The notes below the pieces were generated by a model. It ran no database searches. It was not told the origin of the DNA and was given only the letters and a program-made list of their open reading frames with translations. Below are positions 1-48,325 of a DNA stretch of 64,000 bases, piece after piece. Position 1 is the stretch's first letter, and each line of letters begins with the position of its first letter. The position numbers were made by a program, and so were the translations under genes. Source of the DNA: Monocercomonoides exilis PA203 (Eukaryota; Protista; Preaxostyla); contig LSRY02000006.1 in assembly GCA_001643675.2 (NCBI GenBank), forward strand, positions 248,001-312,000. Reading direction: 5' to 3'.

Positions 1-3000
1 AACCACACTCCCTTCATCCCCCACAGCCTCCATCTTTCCATCAAGATGGATTGTCGATCGAGTCTTCTTCAGACTCTTCACATTCATATCCCCAATCACA
101 CACTCTCCCCCAATCGCCCCTTCTCCATCAATCAGAAGCATATTTACAATGCCTCTTTGAATGTGCTTCACAGCACTGTCAATGCTCAGGCAAGGATTGT
201 TCTGTGCCCCACATTGTCTGTCATCTCTTCCACTTGCAGAGACAAACACCTGCTGGCCATAATAGAATGTGATCAGAGGGATCAGATCAACATCATCCCT
301 TTCCTTGTCAGACCCACAGATGGAGTTGGAGGATTTCAGGGCATCCTGGCTGAGATCCAGCACAAACAATGTCTCGTTGATCTGTTCGGCAATCGACTCG
401 CATCTGATGAACACATCCTTCCCCACAAATGCCTCGTTGCCCCCAAACCTCACATTCTCCATCCTTATCCCAACAGGCCCGAATCCACTGGCTCCACCCT
501 CATTCGGGTCAAGTGCATCAACCATCACCCCTCCTCCTCTCCCCTTCACCCCCGAGCACGAGCACATCCCCAACGAGCATCCAACAACCCTCACTTCTGA
601 TTCTCCTCTCTTCAGGCACACTTTCATCCCTCCTCCTTCCTCGCTCATTTCACTCCTGCAGCTCGAAACCGAACACCCCTCCAACACACACTCCATTGCC
701 CTCGCAAATGAATCCACACTCAACACCCCTGCTCTGTTTTCTCCATTTGTGATGTTTGTGAACGAAGACCCATTCACTTTTATCACCACTTTTTCGTTGT
801 TTGAATGCCTGTTTTCTCCCCTGTTTAACCCTCTTTTGGCTTTTCATCCCATTCGTCTGCTCATCGTCAAACATCGATATCAGACTTCTCTCTTTCACCC
901 CAACATTCGAGATGTTCACATCCTCCACAATCACCTCCATTGTTGCCGCTGCACTGAAAGCGATGAACCCTTTCAATTTGTCAACCGCATCCAACGAACA
1001 TCCTTGAACAACAACTCTGCCTCCATTCACTTTCATCACACAAAATCCTGCATCTGCCATTCCATTCAATGAACCAAATGAGCAATCCACGACTGATAAA
1101 CAGATGTTTGCTCCTGATGATTCGATCAATATCTCATGATGGATGTTTGGATTTGGATTCGAGAATGACAAATTTTCCAGTGTCAGACTCACACAAGATG
1201 ATATTAATGAACCACCAATCAAATCATTCTCATCTTCATCACTGATTATCACTGCTGTGCCTTTCATTGTTCCTTCAATCACCACTTTTTGTGACTCTGA
1301 ATCTTGTGAAGCCGGTGGTGATGAAGAAAATGAAGAAAAATGATATGGAATGTTTCAATAATCCAGAATCCACAATGCTGATGTGGGATTCACCTTCATC
1401 AAGTGGTTCATATCTCAGTGATATCAAGTGGTCAATCGATGAACATGGTGCCTCAGAAAAGCCACATCCACTGAAGTCTCCTCCTCCATCTTTCGAAACA
1501 AACCCATTCCCACTCCAATTAGACCACAAATACACAACCAATGGAATCACATATCCCTCCTCTCCTGTTGTCTTCCTCTCCCATCCGCACAGCTCATCCA
1601 ATGATCCCAACTCCCCTTCACTCATCTCCCATTTGAAGTGCTCCTTGTTCACAATCTTGCTCAGAACCCATCCTGAAACAAACATGTTCTTCCCTTTCCA
1701 AGCATTGCATTGACTGAATATCATTCCTTCGAGCACAAATGATCCCATTTGTTCAGGCAGTTCGGCGAATACCGCTCCTCCTAATCCTCCTTTTTTCTCT
1801 GAACTATCCTCTGATGGAACTTCACATTCAGACAAATTCACATTTTTCATTTCCAAACTTCCTCCACTTCCAACTGATATCATCATCCCTCCTCCTTTCA
1901 TCTCACTTCCACCTGAGCAGATCGAGGACAAATTGCTTTCTTCAATATTCACACATCCACCTTCCTTCATCCCAACATTCAAACATCCCCCTCCTCCACT
2001 TCCACCTGCCACATTCACCTCCACTCCAATCACCCTGCTGTTCAAAATCTCCAATTCAACTCCACTTGTCATTGATATTGGAGATTTCTCATTCATTGTC
2101 ACTCCCCCTTCCATCACAAATCCATCAACAATCAGTTCTCCACCCTCAATGTTTATCACATTATATCCGATCTTTCCATCAGTCAATGCCCCACCCTCAA
2201 ACGAGACTGAACAGTTCGTCATGTTGATTGTTGATGTTGAGTGAATGAATGCACTTCTCCTTGAATTCAACTGATCTTTCACAACAAATGAAAGTCTGCT
2301 CATTGCCAGTGAACTCGAACATCCCACAAGCCAGTCTTGTGTGGCTGATCCTTCATCACTCACATTCACCTGCTTCCTCTCCCCTTCCTCTGATGATGAT
2401 GCTATTCTGCCTGAAATACTCACACCAAATAAAGAAATTTTAATTTCATCCCTTATTGACGAAGATGAGACAACCTCAATTTCATTTGAACTTTCACTCA
2501 ACCTTGAATTCGCACAATAATCAACTGTCAAACACCTGAATGCATCAAATCCACAATGGTTGTGATCCATCCCATTTCTGCCACTCCAATCAACAATCAC
2601 CTTTGTCCCCATTTTGCACAAATACACAAACAGCGGAATCACTCCGCTTTCATCCCCATTTTCACTCCCACTCAGCTTCAGCACATCTGATGGAATGGCG
2701 CTTGTGTCAAAGAATGCAAATGAGCTGGCATTCACTTTTGACTCCAAAAGCACACCACTCCCACAGCTCACAAACACATCCTTCCCATATTCTGCCACAT
2801 TCCCATTCACTTTCGAAAACTTCACATTCTGCCCAATTGTCAATCCACATCCCTCACTCTCCATCAGCACAAACATCCCTCCTCCTCTCCCTCCTCTCCC
2901 TCCATTCCCTCCATTATTCTCTGCCTTGCATCCATCGATGATGCAGGTTCCGTTTAATGTGCATTTGCTGCTTTCTTGGAGGAAAACACACAGACCGCCT

Positions 3001-5237
3001 CCGTTATTGCTTGAGGAGACATTTTCAAAATGACAGTCTTCAGCGATAATGCCGAACGAGAATGTTCCATGAGCTTCGATAACCCCTCCATTTCCCGATA
3101 TCCTTTGGATCAAAGAAAAGTTTGTGTTCACCATATTCAGAACTGAGCCAGGCTGATTCACATTGCATGCGATGAAACTGTCAGACAAGAAATTCATGCC
3201 AGCAATTCCGACTCCTGACAATTCCACATTCCCTGCGCATAAGCGCATGAAAGATGCTTGAAGCTGCAATGTGTTGTCAACCGATGATATTTCGCATTCG
3301 TCCATTGTCAACGATCCATCGCCATCCATCACCACAAAAGGCATGCTTTTCCCACTCTCTGCATTCGCTTGGAGCATTGTCACTTTCTGAACACTAAAGG
3401 CTCCGGATGAAACATGAAAGACAGACTCCAACGATGAAGAAGATTGCACAACACACTCATTCTTTGACAGTCCACAAACACTGAAATTGTTGGAAGCTAT
3501 TGATATTTGTTCTTCTTGGAACACACTTGGTCGCAGGATCAGAGTTTTGTTTGAATTGCTTGTTGTTCTCTCAAGTGAATATTTGATTGAACGGCACAAA
3601 GGTGCAAAACCACATTGTTCATAATCAATCCCCACTGAATAATCAGCTGTTATTTGGTGATTGTTTTCATAATCGCTCAGCCACGAACTCAGATCTGAAA
3701 TTTCAGTGCATTTGTAGTCTCCATCATCGCATCTTGTAATTCTTGGGGATTCACTTGAAGAGAAACAATCAGAAATGTTATTTTCCTCGATTTCCTTCCA
3801 CTGTTGATAATCCCATAAGTGAATATCATGCCCATATACGCTGTTTTCAGCTGTGTTATTATGGAAAAGGCAATATTTGATATTTATTGAAGGCATATCG
3901 GAAGTTTCTTCTTCAGAAAAAAGGATACAAGGAGCAAAGCCTTCGCTCCTGCAATTCTGCATCAAACAGTTTGATATCAATATCGATGTGCTTACGTGCC
4001 AGAAATATGTAACCGATGCGTACGAGCTTGAACTAGCATTATCAAAAAAGCAAGAAACTACATGACATGGATTGACTTTGCATGAAGCCCAATAAAAGCA
4101 AGTTTTGCTTTGAGATGAACAATTTGTAATAGAAGTTGCAAAAATTACTCCTGAATCAATATAATTTAGTTTAAATCCACCTGTTTCTCCTGGTGCTGAA
4201 CATTCGTTCACAATACATTTTTCAGAAACAAATTTTCCTGTAGATGAAAACATCGAAACAGCTCCCGTATCAGTTTTTGAAGAACATTGAATGAACAAAC
4301 AACTGTGCAAAATAATTGATGCATTTTTATTACCAAACAAAGCACCACCTGTTTCATCGCTTTGAACATTGAACGTGTCATCGTTAAACTCATTTTCTCC
4401 TTCTGAAAATGGTTGTCTTTCATGATAAGTTGTGTAGCATTTCAGAAATGAGGAATTATTGCAGCGAAAAGAGATCTTTGCTGGCGAAAGAATGCCTCCA
4501 GAATACGGACTCTCACAACCAATCATCATTGTGCTTTCCACCAAGACTCTTTCAGAACGTCCAATTCCTTTGTTGTATTTTCTCATTGTTTTTTGCAAAG
4601 TGATGTTTTGGAACAAAGCATCAGACACAGACACTGATGAAAGACAACTCGAAGAAAGAAATGGACCACTGCCAAAAACTTCAAATGAAGAAAACATCGA
4701 AGAAGACAAGCACAACTCGCTGCCATGAGGAAGAACATCCTTTGAATGATGAGCTATCAAAGACGATAATTGGCGATCCTGAACCACAAAACCGAAAGAG
4801 ATGTTTCTGAGAGATACTCGGCCTGCGAATGAATGAAGCAGATTTTTCGATTGCGGGATCGCATTGAACGAGCAACAGCAAATGTCCAATTGTGAATTCA
4901 GTTCGAGAGATGCAAAATGCCCCTCAGAATATAAGTTATAGGAAAGGGCAGATGAACAAATGGTGGAGTTTGTGAGAATCAAAAATGAGAGTTCATTTTT
5001 GATTTCCTCTTGTTTTCTCTTCTCGTGATTCGTTTGGCCAAAAGACAAGCCATGATCACCTGAATTCATAATTGTTGTTGCATGGTGGCAACAACCAATT
5101 CCCTCAAGGCTGTTTCCAAAAGCCACGAAAGAAAAGATAAGACACGATGAAATGAGCAGATTCATCGAATGCTGATTATGCACAACCAGATTATATGTCG
5201 GATCCGAATAGACATAATGATTTTTCTCCCGATTCAT
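1..5237 (-). pseudogene. Giant beta-helix-repeat receptor pseudokinase, copy A (5' part only; runs off the window start; two frameshifts)
   Basis: ORF 1275..5381 is colinear with ORF 16170..24107. Likely start is ATG 5237 (MNREK) or 5165 (MNLLISSCLIFSFV, signal-peptide-like). Relative to copy B there is one extra base in the homopolymer at 1336-1340 and another at 841-844, so the frame passes to ORF 650..1285 and then on past base 1. These could be real lesions or homopolymer sequencing errors. Confidence 0.8.
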
Positions 5238-6960
5238 TTTGATTTTCTTTGAAAGCGAAAAATCGAAAAGCAAGCAAAAACAAAAAACAATATCGAGCCA
5301 ATATTCATTGCAACATGAAGAATTTTTCAGAAAACAATAAAAGATGATTTTTTCACAATGGGAGCAATGATAATTTATCATTTGCTAAAATTTAAAAATA
5401 AAGAGAATTATTTTTCAAAGAAGAATCCAATTTCTTTTCTGTACAAGCCAAAAACAACTGATTTTTTCCCCGTTGCATGTTCCGAATGAATACCAATTGT
5501 TCATGAAAGGAACAATTTCCCCACACAGAATAATCTATTTTCTGCCTGGGAATATCAACACAAAAACTCCAATAATGACATTGTTCAAATTCAGAAATCG
5601 GTTTCCAACAGATCAATCCATTCAATAATTTATTTATTCGAAAAAGTTAAAGAAGAAGAAGTCAAAGAAGAAGAACAACCTTCAGAACTGAAAGGCTGAA
5701 CGATAGAATGAAAGAATATCAGAATAGTTGGGCAGATTCAAAAGCTGAATTTGTGATGAAAAATTTCTGAACAGAGTCAGTTTGCATTTTGAATGTTTTG
5801 ATAAAATCCACAAATTTCAAATGAATTCAAACAATGAGATGTTGAAAAATCTTTTTCTTTCTTTTTGTTTTGAATTGACCATTTGTTGTGATGAAAGTGT
5901 TGAAAACAAACCAAACAATGAAATTGCCAAAGAACAACAGCCAAAGCGATTGTCTGTGATTTCCAAAGTGAAGACCACTTCCTTTTGTGGATTGAGCATC
6001 TTTGTTGTTGCTGTCTGTTGCCTTTGGAGACTCCTGCATTCAGAAGCATTGAGAATGGAAATAATGCTCATCATTCTTTTTTTGAAACAAGCAAACCGAA
6101 ATGCCTCCAAAATTTTTTGAGTGCAAACAAAAGGAAACAAAGCAAGAATCAAAGTTGGAAATAGAAAATTACAGGACTTTGAACATTTCATCAAGGCATC
6201 CAAAGAAAGGGCGTTGTATTTATCTTTTTCTCAGAAAAATGCCTGTGTGTCTGAAATGCAATCAGCTTTGTTGCAGCAGCTCCAACACAAAGAATCCCAA
6301 TGGCTTTTTGGCGAGTTGATGTTGAATTATTGGAACAAGATGGTTGATGATCTTTTTTTGAAGAAAACACAACATCGTCTTCTGTGCGTCTCACATGCAG
6401 AAATGCATATTCCATCAATCCTTCTTTGTGAGGGTTTCTTTCGTCAGACAACAAAATGAATGCGTTGCTGTGATCTGTTTGGATTTGGAGAACAACGCTT
6501 TTCCCAAACATATTATTGTCTCATCAACCACTTGGGGATGATGAGAAGTGAGTTGTTTCAGAATAAGATGACATTTCACAAAGTGAAATCGGCAAAACCA
6601 AATGGATCGTATTATTTCATCATTGCATTGACTGTGCTGACATGATGGTGGTGCTTGATGTTTTCATGGGACTTTTGCTCGTTGCAATGGTTTGCTGAAT
6701 GCTCCAAATGTGAATAACAAACAACTGAGTGCATTTATTATTTGATTGATTTGTTTTGTTTTTTCAAAAGAATTTCAATTTGCATGCCTGGTTGCATTAT
6801 CATGTGTTATTTTGAATCGATTGTATTGGTGAGATTTTTTTTTCAGAATGACTTTTTTGGAAGAAACTGAGAAATTCATGGGTGTGCACTTCTTGAAAAG
6901 GAACAAATTTGGAGTCAATACTGAATATGGAAATGGATTTCGAACAACAGATTGTTGGAT
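1..6960. repeat. Inverted repeat 1, left arm (pairs with 14520..21470; continues beyond the window start)
   Basis: Bases 1-60 match the reverse complement of 21411-21470. Similarity continues through the coding region and ~1.7 kb of upstream DNA, ending near GATTTCGAACAACAGATTGTT (~6957 / ~14525). Confidence 0.95.
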
Positions 6961-7491
6961 AAAGAGTGAAAGGAAGATTATTATAGAAGTTAAAAATTGA
7001 AAACTATAATTTTTTCCCAAACATTTAAAAAAAGAAAAATATGTAAATTGTGATTAATGAAAAATACGAAAAAAAAAAACATTTTGATTATAAGTTTTCC
7101 ACTGGCTTGTGTGAAGATGTTGCTATGGCAAAAAAGAAAATGGGTTAGAAAAAAAGATCAAAATTTTACAAAAACTCTATTTTTGCCAATGAATGTGATC
7201 CGTTTTGGCTGGTAAGATCTTTTTATCATTGACGCATCGCTCATGATAATATTCGATATTGATTAAAGAATAATAATCATTCTTTTGCGAATGAAAAACT
7301 TTTAAAATAGAAAATATATGTTTTTTATCCAAAAACAAAAATATCAAATTTGAATTTTTTTGTTATAAAGAATTGATTATTGAAAATGTGATTCATAAAA
7401 AATAGTTCAATTTGCTTCTTCCTCAAGCCTCTATTTCAAATAAATATCCAATAAAAAAAGAAAGGATGGAAGAAAACAAAAAACTTTTCAT

Positions 7492-10400: not shown

Positions 10401-12224
10401 TTTTTTATTAAAAAGGCGGTCAAAATATATTCAGCATACAAGGTATCCGATTTCTGGATCGACGTGCTTTCTGATCCATTCGTTTGCCTTCTTCTCCAAC
10501 TCTCCGTCATTTTCTTTTTCTTCTTGTTTATTCTCATTTCCGACAATTTGAAGTTCAATCAACGATTTCCTCAAAAATTGCTCCGCTTGCAGCCCAATTG
10601 AGGCAGTTGTCGATTCTTTGCTTCCTTCCCCTTCTCCTTCTGTCCTCAAAAGAGAAATAATGAAGTTCTCTGTTTTTAACAGCAATTTGTACAATTTCAT
10701 TTGTTCCTGACAAGTCATTTTGAAAAAATACAAATAAATAGCATTTTCGAATGATTGAATCATATGCAGTCAGATATTGAAAACAGCAAGAAAAGAGTTA
10801 TCATTTCTGGTATTTGACATCGACATTTCCTTTGCAAACCTCTGTGTTATTGATAAACAATGTACGACCAACATTCGTGCAATATCCTTTGTATCTAACA
10901 CCCAATTCGCTTCTCATGCATTGAAAAGTCAGCATCTCCTTGTTTGGTGCCTCTTCCTTTCTGTTTCAATTAAAAAGAAAGTTGCGATAAAAAAAGTGTT
11001 AGATGCTCATCAAACCTTATCTGATCGTTTCCAGATTTTATTTGTGGAGCATAGCACTCTTCCATCTTTTCTGTCTGAACTGCATCTAAGAATTGCACTT
11101 CTGCAGCATTTTTTTCGTCTTCGCTTATTTCCTTCTTCAACTGTTCCTTTAGAGGTTTTGGATCCTCAATTGCTGCAGAAATGGCTTGAGAGATATCTTC
11201 CTCACTTTTAGCTTTATCTTCATCCACCATATCAAGAAGAGAACGAGTTGCCACTCTGTCCATTACAAGCCATGACAAATGCCCAGAGTCAACAATGGTA
11301 TTCTAAAATTTTAAAATAATTTTTTTTCAAAGTTTTGTGTTTACAACATTTGATAATAAAAATTTTCAAAATTAATTATATCAAACTACTTCGTCCTCAT
11401 CTTTTGCACGTAACAAAGACAAGACTCCAGTTGCAATATTTACGCTTTGAGCTTTTTCAATTGATCCCATAGCCTTTTGCACGCGTTTTGCAAAAGCCTT
11501 CTTTGGAGCAAATGGAATTTCTCCAACTCTAACAGATTCACTCAAGCCCAATGAATCTATTTCTGCTTTCCAATATTCGTCAAATACTTGTTCAGCTGCC
11601 TCCGATTCTTTTGGATCCTTGTCTTTCCTTCCTTTTGATGATGGCATTGGAACACGTTTAACTTCAATCAAATTTTGTGCTGGATCTGCATTTTTCAATG
11701 GTTCTAATATATCGGCTATATATCATATTATTTTTATAATTCAATGGAACGCAACAATAGCAGCTTTTAATTCAACACGTTACGAAAAAGAAGTCAAACC
11801 TTTCTTTTCAGTGGCAAAAACAACAAGTTTGTCCTTTTTAATTGTGATCCACACATTTGGTAATTCATATCCAAAAATCCATATTTGAAGTACGTTAATT
11901 AAATGGTATGATTCATCCCCATCTGATGGAAAAAGATAATGAAATTAAAAAAAATATTCAAATATGAAGGAAGATAAAAACGAAAAAATTTATCATACCA
12001 AAAGGCGGAAGAGATATTATATCAGCATTTCCATATTGTTCAGAATTATCCTATTCGTTAAAATCAATATTATTTGAAGAATCAAAGCAAAATATTATTG
12101 TTTGCGGTTTTATTGAGAAGTTGTAAACTTTCCAATGCTGCAAAAATGTTCTAACATGATGCTCAAATATGTTTTTGTCAATTAGCACAGATGCCGAGCT
12201 TGTTGTAGCTGTTGGCGTTGACAT
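7492..12224 (-). CDS. SPT16: FACT complex subunit SPT16 (multi-exon, GT-AG introns)
   Basis: Spliced exons give IDKNIFEHHVRTFLQHWK, LQIWIFGYELP, LGVRYKGYCTNVGRT, VPLHMSTIKSVS, GRLECHINGLRY, LIHFHL..KKTRDVQFYVEV, FERVDFSLRNCDMV, LNWVKILSDIRADPEGFEKEGGWSFL and the acidic tail GKDWDELEEEARKAD. ATG at 12224, TAA at 7492-7494. Some internal exon boundaries are approximate. Confidence 0.96.
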
Positions 12225-12564
12225 GAAGAAAAAGAAATTTGAAGTTATTGATCTCAGCCATAATAAACATTTTTAACTTTCAAAATTCTTCGAATTATCT
12301 CATTTTTTTCCGAAGTCAATCTGGAATTAATAAATAGAAAACTTATAGCGCAATCTTCATTTTTATTTTTGGTAAATTTTTTGAAATATGATGTGTAAAC
12401 GGACAAACAGTTCAATAAATACTCTTAAACGAAAAAAGAATTGAGTAAATAGAGTACACTTTAAACTCTAACAAGAACGTTAATCTCTTATCATGACACA
12501 ATTCTCGCCATGAAGCAATAAAAATTCTCGATTGCATTGTTCGTTGACAAAATATTGCATTCTT

Positions 12565-13821: not shown

Positions 13822-14519
13822 TTTTATTCTGTTTCTGAACCATAATAAAAAATTTCCAAGTTTGTTTTAAAAAAACTTATATGAATATTTGAAAAATTGA
13901 TTTTGAACAAAATTTTCCATTTAAATGAGGAAAATATCATTTTTATTAATTTCAAAAGTTAGAAAAAGACGGGTTTTTTAGACATTCAATGGAAAAATAA
14001 TATTACCTTTTTTATTCAAAAGACAAATTTTTGAAATGATAATTAATGAATTTGATTTCAACTTTTCAAAATATGTGTTCCGTTTTTTAAAGCTTAATTA
14101 TTTTTATTCTTTTTGAAAAATCTGAAATGAATTCAACAAAATTCAATTGATGAATCCACAAATCCAATTAACATACCTTGCAAAATAAAAATGAATTGTG
14201 AAAATCATAAATTAAGTGAAACAAAATCAAAAGAAAAGAAAGCAAACAACAAAAGATAGTGCTTTGATAAAAACACTCCTCTTCTTTTTCAGCAATGAAA
14301 CTAGATTTTGTTAAATTCTATAACACATATATAATTATAGCGCTTCAGCAACCGAAATCCCAATCTGATTCCACTTCTTTTCCATCCTCAGGACTATCTT
14401 GAATGAACATTGTTTTGTTGGCTTCAAGGTGCTTTCGTTCTTTTTACCTCTTTGTTGCTGAATAGATTCTATGTAGTGTTTTTCATTTTATCTTTCATTA
14501 CATCGTCTATTCACTTAAC

Positions 14520-17500
14520 ATCAAACAATCTGTTGTTCGAAATCCATTTCCATATTCAGTATTGACTCCAAATTTGTTCCTTTTCAAGAAGTGCACACCC
14601 ATGAATTTCTCAGTTTCTTCCAAAAAAGTCATTCTGAAAAAAAAAAATCTCACCAACACAATCGATTCAAAATAACACATGATAATGCAACCAGGCATGC
14701 AAATTGAAATTCTTTTGGAAAAACAAAACAAAACAATCAAATAATAAACGCACTCAGTTGTTTGTTATTCACATTTGGAGCATTCAGCAAACAACTGCAA
14801 CGAGCAAAAGTCCCATGAAAACATCAAGCACCACCATCGTGTCAACACAGTCAATCCAATGATGAAATAATATGAGCAATTTGGTTTTGCCGATATCACT
14901 TTGTGAAATGTTATCTTATTCAGAGACAACTCACTTCTCATCATTTCCAAGTGATTGGCAATACGATTATATGTTTGGGAAAAGCGTTGTTCTCCAAATC
15001 CAAACAGATCACAACAACGCATTCATTTTGTTGTCTGACGAAAGAAACCCTCACAAAGAAGGATTGATGGAATCTGCATTTCTGCATGTGAGACGCACAG
15101 ATGACGATGTTGTGTTTTCTTCAAAAAAGAGATCATCAACCATCTTGTTCCAATAATTCAGCATCAGCCCTCCCCAAAGCCATTGGGATTCTTTGTGTTG
15201 GAGCTGCTGCAACAAAGCTGATTGAATTTCAGACACACAGGCATTTTTCTGAGAAAAAGATAAATAACAACGCCCTTTCTTTGGATGCCTTGATGAAATG
15301 TTCAAAGTCCTGTAATTTTCTCTTTCCAACTTCGATTCTCGCATTCTTTCCTTTTGTTTGCACACAAAATATCTTGGAGGCAAATCGGTTTGCTTGTTTC
15401 AAAAAAAGAACAATGAGCATTATTTCCATTCTCAATGCTTCTGAATGCAGGAGTCTCCAAAGGCAACAGACAGCAAAGACAAAGATGCTCAATCCGCAAA
15501 AGGAAGTGGTCTTCACTTTGAAAATTGCAGACAATCGCTTTGGCTGTTGTTCTTTGGCAATTTCATTGTTTGGTTTGTTTTCAACACTTTCATCACAAGA
15601 AATGGTCAATTCAAAACAAAAAGAAAGAAAAATCTTTTTCTTCATTTCATTGTTTGAATTCATTTCAAATTTGTGGATTTCATCAAAACATTCAAAATGC
15701 AAACTGACTCTGGTCAGAAATAATTCATCACAAATTCAGCTTTTGAATCTGTCCAACTATTCTGATATTCTTTCATTCTATTGTTCAGCCTTTCAGTTCT
15801 GAAGGTTGTTCTTTTTATTCGACTTCTTCTTCGAAGAAATAATATGTTGAATGAATTGATCTGTTGGAAACCGATTTCTGAATTTGAACAATGTCATTAT
15901 TGGAGTTTTTGCGTTGATATTCCAAATCAAAAAAGGATTGTTCGGTGTGGGGAAATTGTTCCTTTCATGAACAATTGGTACTCATTTGCAGCATTTAACC
16001 AAAATAAAATCTGAAGTTTTTGGCTTGTGCAGAAAAGAAATTGGATTCTTCTTTGAAAAATAATTCTCTTTATTTTTAAATTTTAGCAAATGATAAATTA
16101 TCATTGCTCCCATTGTGAAAAAATCATCTTTTATTGTTTTCTGAAAAATTCTTCATGTTGCAATGAATATTGGCTCGATATTGTTTTTTGTTTTTGCTTG
16201 CTTTTCGATTTTTCGCTTTCAAAGGGAAAATCAAAATGAATCGGGAGAAAAATCATTATGTCTATTCGGATCCGACATATAATCTGGTTGTGCATAATCA
16301 GCATTCGATGAATCTGCTCATTTCATCGTGTCTTATCTTTTCTTTCGTGGCTTCTGGAAACAGCCTTGAGGGAATTGGTTGTTGCCACCATGCAACAACA
16401 ATTATGAATTCAGGTGATCATGGCCTGTCTTTTGGCCAAACGAATCACGAGAAGAGAAAACAAGAGGAAATCAAAAATGAACTCTCATTTTTGATTCTCA
16501 CAAACTCCACCATTTGTTTATCTGCCCTTTCCTATAACTTATATTCTGAGGGGCATTTTGCGTCTCTCGAACTGAATTCACAATTGGACATTTGCTGTTG
16601 CTCGTTCAACGTGATCCCACAATCGAAAAATCTGCTTCATTCATTCGCAGGCCGAGTATCTCTCAGAAACATCTCTTTCAGTTTTGTGGTTCAGGATCGC
16701 CAATTATCGTCTTTGATAGCTCATCATTCAAAGGATGTTCTTCCTCATGGCAGCGAGTTGTGCTTGTCTTCTTCGATGTTTTCTTCATTTGAAGTTTTTG
16801 GCAGTGGTCCATTTCTTTCTTCGAGTTGTCTGTCATCAGTGTCTGTGTCTGATGCTTTGTTCCAAAACATCACTTTGCAAAACACAATGAGAAAATACAA
16901 CAAAGGAATTGGACGTTCTGAAAGAGTCTTGGTGGAAAGCACAATGATGATTGGTTGTGAAAGTCCGTATTCTGGAGGCATTCTTTCTCCAGCAAAGATC
17001 TCTTTTCGCTGCAATAATTCCTCATTTCTGAAATGCTACACAACTTATCATGAAAGACAACCATTTTCAGAAGGAGAAAATGAGTTTAACGATGACACGT
17101 TCAATGTTCAAAGCGATGAAACAGGTGGTGCTTTTTATGTGAACAATACAGCATCTTTATTGTTACATCGATGCACTTTTTTGAGATGTTCTTCAAAATG
17201 GCATGGAGGTGTTGTTTATATGCTCAAATCAACTGGAAGATTTGTATCAGAAGAATGTGTTGTTAATGAATGCTCAGCACCAGGAGAAACAGGTGGATAT
17301 AGAACTGATAATATCTTTTCTTTCCAAATGAATTCAACATCATTCACCAATTGCTCATCAGAAGGCAAAACTTGTTTTTACATTCCGAATGCAGATAAAA
17401 ATAAGTTCATAATAAATTCATGCATTTTTTACAATGCGACTTCAATCCAGTGCTCTTCGGTCACTCATTTTTTTGAAATAAGAACATTAACATTGATATC

Positions 17501-20500
17501 GAACTGTTTGATGCAGAATTGCAGGAGCGAAGGCTATGCTCCTTGCATATTTTTTGCTCAACAAAATGAACTGTATCAACCATCAATAAATTTAAAGTTT
17601 TGCCTTTTCCATAACAACACGGCTGAAAATGACGCATATGGGCATGATATTCATCTTGCGAATTGTCAAAAGTGGAAGGAAATCGAGGAAAATAACATTT
17701 CTGATTGTTTCTCCTCAAGTGAATCCCCAAGAATTACAAGATGCGATGATGGAGACTACAAATGCACTGAAATTTCAGATCTGAGTTCGTGGCTGAGCGA
17801 TTATGAAAACATTCACCAAATAACAGCTGATTATTCAGTGGGGATTGATCATGAACAATGTGGTTTTGCACCTTTGTGCCGTTCAATCAAATATTCACTT
17901 GAGAGAACAACAAGCAATTCAAACAAAACTCTGATCCTGCGACCAAGTGTGTTCCAAGAAGAACAAATATCAATAGCTTCCAACAATTTCAGTGTTTGTG
18001 GACTGTCAAAGAATGAGTGTGTTGTGCAATCTTCTTCATCGTTGGAGTCTGTCTTTCATGTTTCATCCGGAGCCTTTGGCGTTCAGAAAGTGACAATGCT
18101 CCAAGCGAATGCAGAGAGTGGGAAAAGCATGCCATTTGTGGTGATGGCTGGCGATGGATCGTTGACAATGGACGAATGCGAAATATCATCGGTTGACAAC
18201 ACTTTGCAGCTTCAAGCATCTTTCATGCGCTTATGCGCAGGGAATGTGGAATTGTCAGGAGTCGGAATTGCTGGAATGAATTTCTTGTCTGACAGTTTCA
18301 TCGCATGCAATGTGAATCAGCCTGGCTCAGTTCTGAATATGGTGAACACAAACTTTTCTTTGATCCAAAGGATATCGGGAAATGGAGGGGTTATCGAAGC
18401 TCATGGAACATTCTCGTTCGGCATTATCGCTGAAGACTGTCATTTTGAAAATGTCTCCTCAAGCGATAACGGAGGTGGTCTGTGTGTTTTCCTCCAAGAA
18501 AGCAGCAAATGCACATTAAACGGAACATGCATCATTGATGGATGCAAGGCAGAGAATAATGGAGGGAATGGAGGGAGAGGAGGGAGAGGAGGAGGGATGT
18601 TTGTGCTGATGGAGAGTGGGGGATGTGGATTGACAATTGGGCAGAATGTTGAGTTTTCGAAAGTGAGGGAGAATGTGGCAGAATATGGGAAGGATGTGTT
18701 TGTTGATTGTGGGAGTGGAGTGTTTCTTGAGTCAAAAGTGAATAACAGCTCATTTGCATTGTTTGACACAAGCGCCATTCCATCAGATGTGCTGAAGCTG
18801 AGTGGGAGTGAGAATGGGGATGAAAATGGAGTGATTCCACTGTTTGTGTATTTGTGCACAATGGGAACAAAGGTGATTGTTGATGGGAGTGGAGGAAATG
18901 GGATGGATCACAACCATTGTGGGTTTGAGGCATTCAGGTGTTTGACAGTTGATTATTGCGCGAACTCAAGATTGAGTGAAAGTTCAAAAGAAATAGAGGT
19001 TGTCTCACCTTCGTCAATAAGGGATGAAATTAAAATTTCTTTATTTGGTGTGATAATTTCAGGCAGAATAGCATCATCATCAGAGGGAGAGAGGAAGCAG
19101 GTGAGTGTGAGTGATGGAGGATCAGCCACACAAGATTGGCTTGTGGGATGTTCGAGTTCACTGACAATGAGCAGACTTTCATTTGTTGTGAAAGGTCAGT
19201 TGAATTCAAGGAGAAGTGCATTCGTTCACTCAACATCAACAATCAACATGACGAACTGTTCAGTCTCGTTTGAGGGTGGGGCATTGACTGATGGAAAGAT
19301 CGGATATAATGTGATAAACATTGAGGGTGGAGAACTGATTGTTGATGGATTTGTGATGGAAGGGGGAGTGATAATGAATGGGAAATCTCCAATTGCAATT
19401 TCAAATGGAGCTGAATTGGAGATTTTGAACAGCAGGGTGATTGGAGTGGAGGTGAATGTGGCAGGTGGAAGTGGAGGAGGGGGATGTTTGAATGTTGGGA
19501 TGAAGGAAGGTGGATGTGTGAATATTGAAGAAAGCAATTTGTCCTCGATCTGCTCAGGTGGAAGTGAGATGAAAGGAGGAGGGTTGATGATATCAGTTGG
19601 AAGTGGAGGAAGTTTGGAAATGAAAAATGTGAATTTGTCTGAGTGCAAAGTGCCAACAGAGGATAGAGAGGATGGAGGAAGAGGAATTGGAGGAGGGATG
19701 TTTGTGAAGCTGCCAGATGAGATGGGATCATTTGTGCTCGAAGGAATGATATTTGAGGGATGTGATGCCTGGAAAGGGAAGAACATGTTTGTTTCAGGAT
19801 GGGTTCTGAGAGAGTGTGTGAACAAGGAGCGCTTCAAATGGGAGATGAATCCAGAAGAGTTAGGATCGTTAGATGAGCTGTGTGGATGGGAGAGGAAGAC
19901 AACAAGAGAGGATGGATATGTGATTCCATTGGTTGTGTATTTGTGGAGTAATTGGAGTGGAAATGGGTTTGTTTCGAAAGATGGAGGAGGAGACTTCAGT
20001 GGATGTGGATATTTGGAAGCACCATGTTCATCGATTGACCACTTGGTATCACTGAGATATTCGACACTTGATGAAGGGGAATCCCACATCAGCATTGTGG
20101 GATCAGGGCTGTTGAAACATTCCATATCATTTTCATCTTCTTCCTCATCGCCTCCAGCTTCACCTGATTCAGAGTCACAAAAAGTGGTGATTGAAGGAAC
20201 AATGAAAGGAACAGCAGTGATGACAAGCAATGATGAAGATGAGAATGATTTGATTGGTGGATCATTAATATCATCTGGTGTGAGTTTGACACTGACAAAT
20301 TTGTCATTCTCAAATCCAAATCCAAACAGCCATCATGAGATACTGATCGAATCATCAGGAGCAAACATCTGTTTGTCAGTCGTGGATTGCTCATTTGCCT
20401 CATTGAATGGAATGGCAGATGCAGGATTTTGTGTGATGAAAGTGAATGGAGGCAGAGTTATTGTTCAAGGATGTTCGTTGGATGCAGCTGGAGAGTTGAG

Positions 20501-21470
20501 AGGGTTCATCGCTTTCAGTGCAACAGCAACAAAGGAGGTGATTGTGGAGGATGTGAATATCTCGAATGTTGGGGTGAAAGAGAGAAGTCTGATATCGATG
20601 TTTGAGGATGAGCAGACGAATGGGATGAAAACCAAAAGAGGGATAAACAGGGGAGAAAACAGGCATTCAAACAACGAAAAAGTGGTGATAAAAGTGAATG
20701 GTTCTTCGTTCACAAACATCACAAATGGAGAAAACAGAGCAGGGGTGTTGAGTGTGGATTCATTTGCGAGGGCAATGGAGTGTGTGTTGGAGGGGTGTTC
20801 GGTTTCGAGCTGCAGGAGTGAAATGAGCGAGGAAGGAGGAGGGATGAAAGTGTGTCTGAAGAGAGGAGAATCAGAAGTGAGAGTTGTTGGATGTTCGCTG
20901 GGGATGTGTTCGTGCTCGGGGGTGAAGGGGAGAGGAGGAGGGGTGATGGTTGATGCACTTGACCCGAATGAGGGTGGAGCCAGTGCATTTGGGCCTGTTG
21001 GGATAAGGATGGAGAATGTGAGGTTTTGGGGGAACGAGGCATTTGTGGGGAAGGATGTGTTCATCAGATGCGAGTCGATTGCCGAACAGATCAATGAGAC
21101 ATTGTTTGTGCTGGATCTCAGCCAGGATGCCCTGAAATCCTCCAACTCCATCTGTGGGTCTGACAAGGAGAGGGGTGATGTTGATCTGATCCCTCTGATC
21201 ACATTCTATTATGGCCAGCAGGTGTTTGTCTCTGCAAGTGGAAGAGATGACAGACAATGTGGGGCACAGAACAATCCTTGCCTGAGCATTGGCAGTGCAG
21301 TGAAGCACATTCAAAGAGGTGTGTGGAATTCCATTTGGATTGATGGGGAAGGTGTGATTGGGGGAGTGTGTGTGATTGGGGATATGAATGTGAAGAGTCT
21401 GAAGAAGACTCGATCCACAATCCATCTTGAAGGAAACATGGAGGTTGTGGGGGATGAAGGGAGTGTGGTT
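14520..21470. repeat. Inverted repeat 1, right arm (pairs with 1..6960)
   Basis: Reverse-complement match to 1..6960, covering the upstream non-coding region and the first ~1750 codons of receptor B. Confidence 0.95.
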
Positions 21471-24107
21471 GTGTCTGTGAATGAGAGTGCTGTGGAGAAA
21501 TGTGAATTCTTGTTTGGGTTGAGTTTTGAATCAGAGCATTCAAGCATTGTGAAAGTGAAGAATGGGACATTGGGGGTGAGTGAGTGTTGGTGGAAGAGTG
21601 TTGGAATGATGACACTTTTGAACAGCACAATTGTGGAAGTGGAGAGTGGAGAGCTGGAGATGGAGAAATGTGTTGTCAGCTGTGTTTCCACTTCACGAGA
21701 GATATTGTCAGTCTGTGAAGGGAGCAAGGCTGTGATATATCAGCTGAGGATGAGCGATATCGAGAGCGAGGATGGAGGGATTGTTGATGCGAAGAAAGCA
21801 AGGGTGGAGGCGAAGGAGATGTCGATGAGCAACATCACCAGACAGAACAGAGGGAGCATTGTGAAGATCGTTGATTGTGCAGAAAGAGTGGATTTGATGA
21901 ATTGCTCGATGAGGATGTGTTTGGGGAAAGAGGAGAGAGGATGGATGGTGAGTGTGTGCAAGTGTGAGTGTGTGAATGTTGATTGTTGTGAGTTTGATGG
22001 AGAAGAGGAAGAGAATGAAAAGAGATCAAGAAATGAGCAGGATGAAGGAGAAAGAAGAGAGGAGATATGCAAGTGGAATGGCTCAATGGTTGAATTTGAG
22101 AAGAGTGAAGTGGAGATGAAAGTGACTTCGATGAGAAACAGCAAGAAAGGGGGATTGTCAGTGAGTGGAGGAAGCGTTGCGATTGAGAAAGGAGAGTTTG
22201 CGAACAACAACCCATCCATTGGAAAATATCCCTCAGCTCGGAGAAACATATTGTGTTCGGATTCTGCTCAGCTGAATATCATAAGTCTGAAGGGAGGAGA
22301 TGGGGTTTTACCAAATACATCACTTTGGATTCTGAATGATGGATGCAGTTTGATGGGGATTGTTGAGGAGCGAGCATCGCCATTGTTCATCCCCACACTC
22401 CGATCGGTGGAGACAGAGGAGAAGGAAGGGGTGCTGGATGTTGTGTTCAGGGGCACACTTCTTCTGCCATGCAACCTGTCGTTTCGGGTTGTTTCGTCGG
22501 TGGGGGATGTGGAGCAGATGGAGACTCACGAGATAAGTGAGTCTGGATTTGTGAGTGAAGAGGAAGTTCGTGGCACAACTGTGTTGGAGATGGTCAGAGG
22601 AGCAGAGGCGAGTGCGGAAGTGAGGGTGTGCATCTTGTTTGGAGATGGCCATTCTCCCTCGGCAACTGAGTCATTCATCCTGAAGAACAGGAGCGAGACT
22701 GATCCAAAGGGAGATGAAAGGATTGTTGAAGGAGGAAAAGAAGGGAAATCGATATGGCCAATCGTTGTGATTGTATGTGTTGTATTTGTTGCGCTTCTGC
22801 TTGTTGTTGTTATTGTTCTGGCTGTACGCTGGAGAAAGGTTAAGAATGAAGCAGAAGATCTGAGAGAGATTGTGAATGATAACATCAGAAAGGATCCGAA
22901 GGCATTTGAGATGGTGACAATGGAGATGTCGCCTGAGGAGCAGTGGAGAAGAGCTGAGAGAGACGCAGAGAAGAGGAATGATGAGAGGATAAAGAAGAGG
23001 GTGTATGGGAAGCAGATGCAGCATTCTGAGTCTTCAGAGCATCTTCTATCCGAGAGTGGATCGACTGAATACATTTTGGGCAGAGATTCAGACAAGATCC
23101 CTCAATGGGCACTGGAGAAGGTTGATGAGAAAGAGGAAGAAGAAGAGGAAGAAGAAGAGGAAACAAGGAAGAGAACTCCTTCACCATCCATCTCATCCAC
23201 TTCAACAGCTGATTCTGATTCAACTTTTGTTCGAGTGGAGAGTCTGTGTCCAACCACCTCATCCATGTCGAATCTGGTGGATGCAATGGCATGTTCGTCT
23301 CCTCATGAGAAGCTGATTGTGGACTTGAGGGATTCGCTGTTCATGCTGCTGCACGGAAGGAATAAGACAAAAGAGATGGCGATTGGCACTCTGCAGGAGA
23401 GGGAGCAGACAGCTGCTCAGATCCTGTTCTGGGTGGCAAATGGAGCTCTTCATTCATTTGATGAGATGGAAAATCCACTTCAGTCACTGACAAATCTGAG
23501 TCCTCACATTGTATTGTTCTCGGAGCATATGGTGATCTGCATTGTGATGCATTCGGACTTCTCATCTTCAGACTCAGATTCATCATCGATCTCATCAACA
23601 ACAGTTGTGACATCTGCAAGTGATGATGATGATGATGACTCCCTTCCCTCGTCTGCCTTTGAGGATGAGGATGACTTCAAAAAAGAGTGCCTGAGGTGGA
23701 AGGCGCCTGAGCTGCTGATCAACAAGAAGATGGGTGCAACCAAGGAGTCGGTGGCATTCTCGATCGGGATGATGGTGTGGGAGTGTCTGACGCTCCAGGT
23801 TCCGTTTGGTGATTATGAGGCAGAGGTGGCAGGGCAGAAGATCGTGAATGGGGAGAGGCCAGCCCTGGGCAGCGCGGAGCGATCGTCGTTCTGCTCTGTG
23901 GTTGAAAACTGCCTCAACAGCCTTTCGCAGAAGCGCCCATCCCTCGCAACCCTCAAAAGAGAGCTCTTCCTGCATTTTCCGCTGGGAGCGATGGTCCTCA
24001 CAGCCTCAGATGCCATCGATCGCACAACGGACAGCCAGCAGTCTGGCAGAGGTGCATCGAGTGAACTTGCTTGCAGCGAAAGCGAAATACTTGAAAATCG
24101 CAACTAG
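16236..24107 (+). CDS. Giant single-pass receptor, copy B (intact, ~2620 aa): signal peptide, beta-helix/pectin-lyase-like repeat ectodomain, TM helix, TKL-type pseudokinase
   Basis: Uninterrupted ORF. First ATG is 16236 (alternative 16308, MNLLISSCLIFSFVASG). Four GxDxxxCG...C modules with GNGG/GGG, GKDVF and IPLxVY motifs. TM WPIVVIVCVVFVALLLVVVIVLAV-RWRK at ~22753-22835. Kinase C-lobe motifs RWKAPE, FSIGMMVWECLT..VPF and GERP, with no GxGxxG, VAIK, HRD or DFG. Confidence 0.9.
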   Translation: MNREKNHYVYSDPTYNLVVHNQHSMNLLISSCLIFSFVASGNSLEGIGCCHHATTIMNSGDHGLSFGQTNHEKRKQEEIKNELSFLILTNSTICLSALSYNLYSEGHFASLELNSQLDICCCSFNVIPQSKNLLHSFAGRVSLRNISFSFVVQDRQLSSLIAHHSKDVLPHGSELCLSSSMFSSFEVFGSGPFLSSSCLSSVSVSDALFQNITLQNTMRKYNKGIGRSERVLVESTMMIGCESPYSGGILSPAKISFRCNNSSFLKCYTTYHERQPFSEGENEFNDDTFNVQSDETGGAFYVNNTASLLLHRCTFLRCSSKWHGGVVYMLKSTGRFVSEECVVNECSAPGETGGYRTDNIFSFQMNSTSFTNCSSEGKTCFYIPNADKNKFIINSCIFYNATSIQCSSVTHFFEIRTLTLISNCLMQNCRSEGYAPCIFFAQQNELYQPSINLKFCLFHNNTAENDAYGHDIHLANCQKWKEIEENNISDCFSSSESPRITRCDDGDYKCTEISDLSSWLSDYENIHQITADYSVGIDHEQCGFAPLCRSIKYSLERTTSNSNKTLILRPSVFQEEQISIASNNFSVCGLSKNECVVQSSSSLESVFHVSSGAFGVQKVTMLQANAESGKSMPFVVMAGDGSLTMDECEISSVDNTLQLQASFMRLCAGNVELSGVGIAGMNFLSDSFIACNVNQPGSVLNMVNTNFSLIQRISGNGGVIEAHGTFSFGIIAEDCHFENVSSSDNGGGLCVFLQESSKCTLNGTCIIDGCKAENNGGNGGRGGRGGGMFVLMESGGCGLTIGQNVEFSKVRENVAEYGKDVFVDCGSGVFLESKVNNSSFALFDTSAIPSDVLKLSGSENGDENGVIPLFVYLCTMGTKVIVDGSGGNGMDHNHCGFEAFRCLTVDYCANSRLSESSKEIEVVSPSSIRDEIKISLFGVIISGRIASSSEGERKQVSVSDGGSATQDWLVGCSSSLTMSRLSFVVKGQLNSRRSAFVHSTSTINMTNCSVSFEGGALTDGKIGYNVINIEGGELIVDGFVMEGGVIMNGKSPIAISNGAELEILNSRVIGVEVNVAGGSGGGGCLNVGMKEGGCVNIEESNLSSICSGGSEMKGGGLMISVGSGGSLEMKNVNLSECKVPTEDREDGGRGIGGGMFVKLPDEMGSFVLEGMIFEGCDAWKGKNMFVSGWVLRECVNKERFKWEMNPEELGSLDELCGWERKTTREDGYVIPLVVYLWSNWSGNGFVSKDGGGDFSGCGYLEAPCSSIDHLVSLRYSTLDEGESHISIVGSGLLKHSISFSSSSSSPPASPDSESQKVVIEGTMKGTAVMTSNDEDENDLIGGSLISSGVSLTLTNLSFSNPNPNSHHEILIESSGANICLSVVDCSFASLNGMADAGFCVMKVNGGRVIVQGCSLDAAGELRGFIAFSATATKEVIVEDVNISNVGVKERSLISMFEDEQTNGMKTKRGINRGENRHSNNEKVVIKVNGSSFTNITNGENRAGVLSVDSFARAMECVLEGCSVSSCRSEMSEEGGGMKVCLKRGESEVRVVGCSLGMCSCSGVKGRGGGVMVDALDPNEGGASAFGPVGIRMENVRFWGNEAFVGKDVFIRCESIAEQINETLFVLDLSQDALKSSNSICGSDKERGDVDLIPLITFYYGQQVFVSASGRDDRQCGAQNNPCLSIGSAVKHIQRGVWNSIWIDGEGVIGGVCVIGDMNVKSLKKTRSTIHLEGNMEVVGDEGSVVVSVNESAVEKCEFLFGLSFESEHSSIVKVKNGTLGVSECWWKSVGMMTLLNSTIVEVESGELEMEKCVVSCVSTSREILSVCEGSKAVIYQLRMSDIESEDGGIVDAKKARVEAKEMSMSNITRQNRGSIVKIVDCAERVDLMNCSMRMCLGKEERGWMVSVCKCECVNVDCCEFDGEEEENEKRSRNEQDEGERREEICKWNGSMVEFEKSEVEMKVTSMRNSKKGGLSVSGGSVAIEKGEFANNNPSIGKYPSARRNILCSDSAQLNIISLKGGDGVLPNTSLWILNDGCSLMGIVEERASPLFIPTLRSVETEEKEGVLDVVFRGTLLLPCNLSFRVVSSVGDVEQMETHEISESGFVSEEEVRGTTVLEMVRGAEASAEVRVCILFGDGHSPSATESFILKNRSETDPKGDERIVEGGKEGKSIWPIVVIVCVVFVALLLVVVIVLAVRWRKVKNEAEDLREIVNDNIRKDPKAFEMVTMEMSPEEQWRRAERDAEKRNDERIKKRVYGKQMQHSESSEHLLSESGSTEYILGRDSDKIPQWALEKVDEKEEEEEEEEEETRKRTPSPSISSTSTADSDSTFVRVESLCPTTSSMSNLVDAMACSSPHEKLIVDLRDSLFMLLHGRNKTKEMAIGTLQEREQTAAQILFWVANGALHSFDEMENPLQSLTNLSPHIVLFSEHMVICIVMHSDFSSSDSDSSSISSTTVVTSASDDDDDDSLPSSAFEDEDDFKKECLRWKAPELLINKKMGATKESVAFSIGMMVWECLTLQVPFGDYEAEVAGQKIVNGERPALGSAERSSFCSVVENCLNSLSQKRPSLATLKRELFLHFPLGAMVLTASDAIDRTTDSQQSGRGASSELACSESEILENRN

Positions 24108-46900: not shown

Positions 46901-48325
46901 GAAAAACAAGAAAAGGAACCTTGGTGGTGTTGAAGCCCAACTTTCGTGGCAATCCATGAAAAGGGCTGCACTCCCCAAATTAGAGTGAAAATCACTCCAA
47001 TAGCAGTTGCTGAAATATAAATTTTTTGGTGCAGGGTCAAAATAATTACTGCCATTTGTGCTTGTGTTCCAACCAATAAATAAACAAGATTCCATAATTG
47101 CGTTGTTAATTAAACTTTGCATTTGAAAAAATCGAATATCATGTCCACAAGATAGAGCAACGTTCCCAATATATGTGCATTTTTCAATAATAACTTTATC
47201 TGTCATGGATGTGAAGTATGTTCCTCCTCCATAATTTGCGGTGTTGTTTTCAAAATAGCAATTTAAGATTGATTTCAAATTCGAATTTGCTACATAAATT
47301 GCTCCACCATCTATGCTGGCCATACAAATGAAAAAGCTGCAGTTCACAACCGATAGCGTCAATGATGATCCAGCACAGAAGATTCCTCCACCTCTTGTGA
47401 TCTCAGTGTCGTTTGCAATACACATTTCAAAAATTGAGTTTTTAAATGAAACTTCTCCAATGAAATGCCTTTGAGATGTATTGTAACGAGTTGGTTCATT
47501 TTTTGTGCGGCAGCATTTTGAGAATGTTGAATTAGAACATACAAAGTTTCTGGATGAAGGCGAATTGATGGAGCAAGAAATACCATCATTGAAGACATTC
47601 TCAACGCTTGAAAAGACACACGACGAAAAAGAAGTTGAGAATAAGCCGTTTTTGTGCTTCACTTCATTTCTGTCATACGATGCGGTGATGTTTGAAAGCA
47701 GGCATCTTTGCATCGATGCTTGTGTGTCACTTTCAGTGCATAACAAAGGAGCATTCAATATTTCTGCGGATGACAGAATAGAATCAGAGATTGATATGAT
47801 ACACGGACAACAGGACAAGGACGGCGAAGAAGAAGATACTGGAAATGAAGATGATACAAAATAAAGTGAATTGGAAACGGATGAAAACTGAAGGGAAATG
47901 CTCTCGAGAAGAAGCTCGCTTTCATCACATGTGAAAAGTGCATTCTTTTTTTCTCTTGAATGGAACAGAATGCAATGCTTGAGGGAAGTTCTCGATAATC
48001 TTCGAGAAATCACAATCGATGAATTCGAATGTTGAGCCATTGCAACTGTTTCGAATTGAACAGAAGAGTTGATTGCATTTGTCGAAATTAGCAAAGAACG
48101 GGGCTTCTGCTCAAATATATGTGGTAATTTGTATGAAAAATATGCTTCACATGTTTTTTCATTTGCAGTATTTTTGTTGTTGCATTGATAAATGCATCCA
48201 ATGTTTTGCAAACTTGAATATACAAATGAATTTGGATTTTCAATGGTGAGAGTCTTCTTCTCAGAAAAGAGTGTGAAACAGAATTGGAAATATTAGGCTG
48301 TGATTAAAAGAGAGACATAAAGCAT
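35934..48325 (-). pseudogene. Giant beta-helix-repeat receptor pseudokinase, copy C (~4100 aa if repaired; one frameshift and an early in-frame stop)
   Basis: ORFs 46409..48211 and 35934..46394 join if one base is added at ~46426-46429 (VEI-x-PPSSSLTVFYSLAALAHPQ). Eight GxD/NxxxCG..C modules, TM at ~37219-37291, and a pseudokinase tail almost identical to copy B. Candidate ATG 48325 (MLYVSLLITA*YFQFCFTLF) is in frame but has TAA at 48293-48295. Functional status is uncertain. Confidence 0.75.

Follow-up and report, generated by a model that had tools for sequence, protein, structure and literature searches.

Introduction

Palindromes that form from short inverted repeats after a DNA break are familiar from the ribosomal DNA of Tetrahymena, from yeast and from mammalian gene amplification, and the Entamoeba transmembrane kinases and the Trichomonas BspA/Pmp-like proteins are large receptor-like families with repetitive ectodomains, some of which have inactive kinase domains. 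Both have counterparts in the stretch of DNA described here, 64,000 nucleotides of the genome of the flagellate Monocercomonoides exilis PA203 (contig C58:248001-312000, hereafter the window), which contains three giant receptor-like genes, A, B and C; a fourth, Z, lies to the left of the window. The cluster of Z, A, B and C is a palindrome of palindromes that is present in the DNA. We consider it probable that the four genes are members of a huge family reshuffled by ordinary recombination between palindrome arms and with paralogues, and not parts of a programmed switch.

As in the break-induced palindromes, a short hairpin-forming repeat lies on the axis and the arms correspond to one flank of the repeat. 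Those palindromes are terminal or amplified, whereas the M. exilis ones are interstitial and single, and the hairpin occupies two of about nine centres. The Entamoeba and Trichomonas families resemble the present one as large receptor-like families of anaerobic gut protists with repetitive ectodomains, but they have no sequence relation to it, and the M. exilis proteins combine a beta-helix chain without a Pfam match and a tail without a kinase N-lobe.

Two other described systems are close to the cluster. In the available text of two reports on mammalian sex chromosomes, palindrome identity is maintained by intrachromosomal conversion (PMC3723533, PMC8600007). The palindromes described there are, like those of M. 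exilis, kilobase-scale inverted repeats of more than 99% identity with short spacers and multi-copy genes; compared with that text, the M. exilis ones are nested, smaller (arms of 2-14 kb), spread over many contigs and overwritten by paralogues in their outer parts. The properties of large palindromes are found in the Z/A pair (9.1-kb arms) and in the B/C pair (100% identity over 23850-26684 and around the centre). In Giardia muris, genes for variant-specific surface proteins (VSPs) occur in identical head-to-head or tail-to-tail pairs, so that another metamonad family combines a variable ectodomain and a conserved C-terminus with near-identical inverted pairs (PMC7641422). The VSPs differ in being unrelated and cysteine-rich with a very short conserved tail, and antigenic switching is established for them, not for the M. 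exilis family.

M. exilis was the first eukaryote recognised as lacking mitochondria and is studied for that, and its largest gene family has hitherto been listed only as "tyrosine kinases". The available text of the genome reports gives 332 models for this protein tyrosine kinase (TKL) family, which it ranks as the largest of the species (PMC6759080), and notes its overlap with "unclassified repeats" (PMC6759080, PMC8767320). The protein matches listed for our genes are MONOS_ proteins carrying PF07714, that is, the same genes as the published family. Where that text treats 332 models as kinases, we count at least 883 tails in which only the C-lobe is kinase-like. Term searches found no mention of a beta-helix ectodomain in the available text of PMC6759080, nor of palindromes or an inverted arrangement in that of PMC8767320, and a literature search found no paper linking palindromes, gene conversion, pseudokinases or beta-helix to M. 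exilis. The present analysis adds that the family would consist of giant beta-helix surface proteins with a kinase remnant, encoded by about 900 genes rather than 332, and that it would evolve by palindromic duplication and patchwork conversion, like parasite variant surface families. It offers a tractable model for palindrome formation and homogenisation outside sex chromosomes, and one may ask what so many receptors allow a commensal gut flagellate to sense or bind.

Data and comparisons

The following data have been used. The assembly searched comprises 82.3 Mb in 101 contigs and was obtained with Nanopore sequencing, according to the available text of PMC8767320. Self-comparison was extended from the window to 30 kb on its left and 10 kb on its right, and negative positions denote sequence left of the window. 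Identity between A and B was scanned by a 100-nt sliding comparison, and windows of 150 nt were used to compare B with Z, A and C and with p367, p436, p597 and p637, four further paralogues on C58. Short-read DNA contigs came from two runs of one sample, and RNA contigs came from two libraries of pooled RNA.

Nested inverted repeats in the cluster

Fifteen inverted pairs forming two arm sets were found in the window by a repeat search, and the same search found no direct repeat or direct repeat family within the window. The first set joins 1-6843 with 14639-21470 in ten collinear pieces (91-96% identity), and the second joins 22147-26684 with 33359-37900 (92-100%), with an inner palindrome at 31458-33359. 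A first reading of these letters without database searches (the sequence-only reading) had described such inverted arms around a spacer at 6961-14519, and both were recovered: the homology of the first arm set, its ends read directly, stops abruptly at about 6957 and about 14523. The features of the window are listed below, with open reading frames abbreviated as ORFs.

1-5237, minus strand: in-window part of gene A (ORFs 1275-5381 and 650-1285), a mirror copy of B that extends left to about -2627
5238-6957: 5' flank of A, inner end of the head-to-head arm, 85-97% identical to 14523-16235
6958-14522: unique spacer of the A/B inverted repeat, with no repeat found within it
about 7902-10277, minus strand: SPT16, several exons, a spacer gene (Pfam PF08644, PF08512, PF24824)
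12746-13282, minus strand: RNase P p30, a spacer gene (Pfam PF01876)
14523-16235: 5' flank of B, head-to-head arm, RNA-silent
16236-24107, plus strand: gene B, an ORF of 2,623 codons with four beta-helix modules, stalk, membrane span and tail
17131-17670, plus strand: diverged cassette in B; the A counterpart, of near-equal length, is at about 3825-4365
22147-24107, plus strand: constant region of B (stalk, span and tail), mirrored in C at 35934-37900
24108-26684: 3' flank of B, palindrome arm, about 100% identical to 33359-35933
26685-31457: DIRS-like transposon of 4,773 bp, in the B-side arm only and absent from the Z, A and C arms
31458-33359: centre of the B/C palindrome, its halves 91.5% alike
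32272-32545: hairpin element of 274 bp, resembling a miniature inverted-repeat transposable element (MITE-like), exactly on the B/C symmetry axis
33360-35933: 3' flank of C, palindrome arm with the empty transposon site
35934-48211, minus strand: gene C, about 4,090 codons in two frames (46409-48211 and 35934-46394), with at least eight modules and a B-type stalk and tail

The head-to-head copies A and B had been read as sharing their upstream DNA and the 5' two-thirds of the gene. The homology is not limited to these parts; it extends over 12,263 bp (-5212..7003 against 26684..14480, 93.7%) and takes in the entire gene and both flanks. This A/B inverted duplication is built around the housekeeping genes SPT16 and RNase P p30. 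From the stalk through the membrane anchor and tail to the 3' flank, B and C are mirror images of each other (22147-26684 against 33359-37900), with 97% identity overall and 100% near the centre, in agreement with the earlier description of a shared juxtamembrane region, tail and 3' flank. The B type of 3' flank follows eight genes, all on contig C58.

The chain of three genes seen in the window is extended on its left by gene Z (about -19340..-10033, plus strand, 3,102 codons), which stands tail to tail with A. The Z/A palindrome has 9.1-kb arms of 99.3% identity and a unique centre of 208 bp, and over about 8.8 kb Z and A differ by one substitution and by single-base insertions or deletions, mainly in homopolymer runs. 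Besides A, Z has matches in B (direct orientation, 94.3%) and in C (inverted, 94.1%), and the sequence at the B/C centre recurs at the Z/A centre (96-98%). An outer palindrome extends from about -12000 to 37900, with arms of about 19 kb and about 94% identity around the 7.6-kb spacer, and each of its arms contains one tail-to-tail palindrome, Z/A or B/C.

Proteins of the family

The family proteins are type I membrane proteins with a variable ectodomain of four to nine right-handed beta-helix modules, a conserved stalk, a membrane span and a conserved tail whose kinase-like part corresponds to the C-lobe of a TKL-type kinase. Gene B probably encodes a signal peptide from the in-frame ATG at 16308, and its membrane span, near 22746-22845, is followed by RWRK. 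Ectodomain units of 330-440 residues, marked by the motifs GKD.F, IPL and CG..PC, number four in B and at least eight in C, and after them come a stalk, conserved and about 200 residues long, a single membrane span and some 420 residues of cytoplasmic tail.

The beta-helix ectodomain proposed earlier gains support from a confident model of B residues 880-1290, with a predicted local distance difference test score (pLDDT) of 90.3 and a predicted template modelling score (pTM) of 0.89. Nearly all of the 50 best PDB matches to this model are right-handed beta-helix proteins (among them tailspikes and pectin enzymes), the atlas matches with template modelling (TM) scores of 0.50-0.68 include the DUF1565, Beta_helix and NosD families, and some family proteins match PF13229. 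The model thus supports a predicted right-handed parallel beta-helix for the module. Sequence searches were negative for the modules: at E <= 0.01 Pfam matched none of 61, searching PDB sequences with a module profile gave nothing, and the Chlam_PMP repeat (PF02415) was not matched in the 61 modules or in whole proteins, the only resemblance to it being one in language-model features.

In the tail, the Pfam PK_Tyr_Ser-Thr match comprises profile positions 162-258 only, from the APE motif to the end, and matches to Pfam and PDB kinase profiles cover only positions of about 161-260. The 200 residues between the membrane span and the kinase match are acidic, Ser-rich and helical; no N-lobe (glycine-rich loop or VAIK lysine) was found in the tail, and no GxGxxG was found from the span to APE. 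At the place of the catalytic loop the family consensus is QSLxNLSPHIVLF ... VICIVMHSD, and neither the catalytic Asp nor DFG was found there by manual alignment and sequence reading, Asn standing at the place of the catalytic Asp. RWKAPE is invariant across the family, the APE motif and C-lobe helices are present, and the best solved relatives of the tail are ILK, ZAK/MLT and TAK1 (E 2e-6 to 5e-6 over about 90 residues). An AlphaFold structure of the tail was rejected for fold search as too poor (mean pLDDT 48.5), and sequence profiles were used for the kinase reading. By sequence, pseudokinase, the term of the sequence-only reading, is a fair name for the tail, and kinase C-lobe remnant a more exact one.

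The most conserved block of the family, CPTTSSMSNLVDAMACSSPHEKLIVDLRDSLFMLLHG, lies just before the kinase remnant. A degenerate DNA pattern coding DLRDSLFMLLHG, which is part of this block, has 883 exact matches in the genome (431 forward and 452 reverse; control 0), from which we estimate that the family has at least 883 copies and, at 7-8 kb per gene, occupies about 8% of the genome. A profile search of 1.8 billion proteins matched other kinases outside M. exilis through the C-lobe only. One full-length distant homologue outside M. exilis, P0213 (1,792 amino acids; SRR13490893 contig, 1391-6769), matches at 23-30% over head, stalk and tail. Since DNA word depth climbs from about 100 to 2,000-4,600 at 18600-20000, the B module in this interval is shared nearly exactly by many family members.

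Mosaic genes and their expression

The differences between A and B are blocky, with one variable cassette, as had been noticed from the letters: blocks of 98-100% identity are broken by a cassette of 60-79% (B 17152-17650) and by a block of 72-89% (19645-20250). Synonymous divergence (dS) in successive blocks is 0.037, 0.89, 0.039, 0.089, 0.35, 0.11, 0.04 and 0.21. In the cassette dS is 0.89 and nonsynonymous divergence (dN) is 0.31 (dN/dS 0.35), against a dS of 0.04 in the flanks. Across all blocks dN/dS is 0.12-0.48 (0.12 in the tail and 0.19-0.48 in the ectodomain), which indicates purifying selection. Because of the block-wise dS and these dN/dS values, the cassette is read as an old segment in a young background and not as a hot spot of positive selection. 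Two candidate origins of the cassette were rejected: local positive selection by its dS of 0.89 and dN/dS of 0.35, and recent import from an extant paralogue by the best genome copies of the two versions, which reach 76% and 73%.

Gene B is pieced together from blocks that resemble A/Z, C or more distant paralogues, in line with the arm-to-arm exchange expected earlier. Its nearest relative alternates overall among Z/A, C, p367, p436, p597 and p637, and within 18600-22050 among p367, Z/A, p597 and p436. At 22650-23099 it is 98-100% identical to Z/A and 77-91% to C; at 23100-23399 it is 100% identical to C and 71-91% to Z/A; and at 23850-26684 it is 99-100% identical to C. With 323 informative sites in seven sequences, a statistic resembling the pairwise homoplasy index (PHI) was 0.392, against 0.493 +/- 0.006 after shuffling (0 of 1000 permutations were as low), which means that adjacent sites are much more compatible than in shuffled order, and 49% of site pairs failed the four-gamete test. 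Over 10.4 kb the ectodomain of C shares 95.8% identity with an intact p637-type paralogue of 4,115 codons at C58:636 kb; since its tail is B-like, C is a head/tail recombinant, with a p637-type ectodomain on a B-type tail. The comparisons show the genes to be mosaics that arose as the arms recombined with each other and with paralogues as far as about 350 kb away.

The RNA contigs have a depth of 0 over 14400-16199, upstream of B, in both libraries, while DNA contigs cover this stretch, and the RNA contigs of B start at 16248, just 12 nt past the first ATG. A stretch of 139 nt with 38 A/B differences is crossed by the RNA contig 17532-18015, which agrees with B there, and other RNA contigs carry A alleles, so that A and B both appear to be transcribed in the population. 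Mutually exclusive expression, which had been raised as a possibility, left no sign in this pooled RNA, where A-type alleles and the B-specific piece are both present and which is uninformative on expression level or single-cell pattern.

The earlier reading had gone further and proposed a candidate receptor-diversification system. If such a system were a dedicated one, selection would maintain the inverted layout because conversion and inversion between the arms quickly yield new receptor or antigen variants, perhaps with one gene expressed at a time. In its favour, mosaic blocks and head/tail recombinants do exist, other family members also lie in palindromes, and the design of a constant tail with a variable head resembles known variant surface families; the identical inverted pairs of Giardia muris VSP genes also speak for such a system (PMC7641422). 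What is missing at the locus is the machinery: no recombinase, reverse transcriptase or other dedicated enzyme gene and no recognition or template sequence was found there, its ORFs being those of the family genes, SPT16, RNase P p30 and an ORF-poor transposon remnant. Moreover, dN/dS stays below 0.5 in all blocks without a sign of positive selection, the cassette has no donor in the assembly, A-type and B-specific RNA occur in the same library, and spacers of about 75 bp to 7.6 kb and arm ends at arbitrary places inside genes look like accidents, not a designed layout. We therefore regard a dedicated system as unlikely. The shuffling that the earlier reading proposed is borne out in part: sequence is exchanged between the arms, and variable ectodomains stand on one constant stalk, membrane span and tail, as in the recombinant C. 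Ordinary recombination among arms and paralogues would lead to a slow evolutionary reshuffling of heads onto one constant tail.

A one-sided transposon between identical arms

The DIRS-like transposon in the B-side arm belongs to an element with at least 40 dispersed copies of 67-93% identity, the best at 87-93%. Its positions 1-61 recur inverted at 4018-4081 and positions 22-98 recur inverted at 4691-4773, in the B-arm copy and in others, and this combination of inverted ends with an internal complementary stretch is the DIRS-like layout. No reverse transcriptase or tyrosine recombinase was found in the element, which has no ORF longer than 138 amino acids and no Pfam match in eight ORFs; the B-arm copy appears to be degenerate or non-autonomous. 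It is considered old because no other copy resembles it by more than 93% and because it lacks any ORF above that length. The sequences flanking it, 25657-26684 (1,028 nt) and 31458-31785 (328 nt), are 100% identical to the other arm. The simplest reading, drawn from one genome, is that the B/C arms were made identical again after the old transposon had entered one of them, each side separately. An old one-arm insertion between identical flanks argues for conversion, not youth.

This bears directly on the suggestion that the cluster consists of recent inverted duplications only, whose blocky differences would go back to the duplications themselves or to a few ectopic crossovers, and between whose arms conversion would not be going on. 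The single substitution in 8.8 kb between Z and A agrees with it, and so do the insertions and deletions in homopolymers that account for most of their differences, a pattern that Nanopore sequencing of a very young copy would give. However, the identity of the B/C arms on both sides of the old insertion does not, and away from the centre the identity of B and C drops from 100% to 77-91%, in sharp blocks that match Z/A instead, while dS varies 24-fold along the one gene pair A/B. Duplication alone is thus a very unlikely explanation. With recombination as the preferred explanation, arm-to-arm gene conversion would keep the inner parts of the palindromes alike and patchy conversion from other paralogues would erode the outer parts, because of which the homology of the arms would end inside genes.

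Short-read evidence for the duplications

The B-specific cassette (17105-17700) and the spacer/arm junction (14400-14553 and 14524-14838) are both reproduced, free of substitutions, by contigs of short DNA reads. The depth of these contigs is about 35-40, the single-copy level, at the cassette and the junction, against 100-170 in the parts shared by A and B, and 11 of 12 alternative letters in the contigs are A alleles. Because of these substitution-free contigs and the contrast between single-copy and shared depth, the duplication exists in the DNA and was not created by the assembly.

Relative to B and Z, gene A has single-base breaks, an extra T at 1340 in a T-run and an extra base at 841-844 beside an A-run, which may be Nanopore errors. 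Compared with the intact paralogue at C58:636 kb, gene C lacks one base at 46430 and one at 48141. The palindromic arms may have escaped short-read polishing, and annotators should be warned that frame breaks in palindromic arms of a Nanopore assembly may be errors. That the arrangement itself was produced by fold-back chimeric Nanopore reads, or by haplotypes joined in inverted orientation, would fit the single-base frame breaks of A, at least one of which is in a homopolymer run, those of C and those of the genes of a palindrome on contig C5, as well as a palindrome that extends to the very start of contig C1, but it is extremely improbable, since the arms differ by substitutions, a 540-bp cassette and a 4.8-kb transposon, the cassette and junction are reproduced at single-copy depth, the shared parts have at least twice that depth, and A-type alleles form separate contigs.

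Palindromes elsewhere in the genome and the hairpin element

Other family members in inverted pairs, which the earlier reading had suggested looking for, were found on six contigs. Tail-to-tail palindromes occur on C36 (2.1-kb arms), C22 (3.8-kb arms) and C6 (3.3-kb arms), and C9 has two, with arms of more than 4.8 kb and of 3 kb. C1 has three copies of one tail-to-tail palindrome with a shared 1.4-kb spacer (C1:1-10000, 73-83 kb and 187-197 kb), and the left arm of the first runs to the first base of the contig. On C5, a head-to-head palindrome of 28 kb with two family genes (positions 1479-29849 of C5:1008001-1048000) has 14-kb arms of 99.6% identity around a spacer of about 250 bp, and its ORFs are fragmented differently in the two arms. 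Among the matches listed, on four contigs, 10 of 98 tails lie in verified young palindromes. The recurring palindromes are what would be expected from a general recombination habit of the genome.

The hairpin element on the B/C axis belongs to a family of MITE-like elements of 250-300 bp with a conserved end core. Its inverted-end cores lie at 32285-32309 and 32502-32526 (two matches against 0 expected), its stem is 64 bp, and its single strand has a folding energy of -87.7 kcal/mol (z = -14). The end core, TTCTTTTTGAAAAGTCGCAAATGTT, has 397 copies in the genome, many of them as inverted pairs 200 bp apart. At the Z/A centre the same hairpin ends stand around a 516-bp loop, and the independent C22 palindrome has one hairpin end inside its centre of about 105 bp. 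The exact core is absent from the palindrome centres on C36, C9 (two), C1 (three), C6 and C5.

At the centre the order is flank, hairpin and mirror flank, which is just what would result if a break were followed by fold-back priming at a short inverted repeat. Tail-to-tail palindromes would thus be made by fold-back copying at a short hairpin downstream of a gene. It is possible, though we put it forward only tentatively and with some doubt, that hairpin transposons downstream of family genes repeatedly trigger such copying, and that the resulting palindromes give birth to new members and act as hot spots of conversion. If this is true, a mobile element would be the motor of expansion and reshuffling for about 900 giant receptor-like genes, about 8% of the genome.

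Several points weigh against the explanation by palindromic duplication and ordinary recombination, or narrow parts of it. The hairpin element is central in only two of about nine independent palindromes examined, against an estimated 0.08 expected by chance, so that it is not the sole route to palindromes and its association with the centres is suggestive without being general; it could also have been inserted into a palindrome already present. The sample on inverted arrangement is small, as neighbours with identical motifs are inverted in seven cases and tandem in two, on the same four contigs among the matches listed. No donor above 76% identity was found in the assembly for either version of the cassette, and the near identity of Z and A could come from very recent duplication rather than conversion. 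Location at the surface, binding of ligands and loss of kinase activity are properties that we infer from the sequences of the proteins.

Neighbouring sequences

To the right of gene C there are three long ORFs on the minus strand (49042-52335, 54051-57056 and 57192-63908), which lie outside the receptor family and for which no Pfam match was found. Past the right end of the window, two small adjoining self-palindromes at 70393-71769 (473 nt at 74% and 854 nt at 92%) are unrelated to the family genes.

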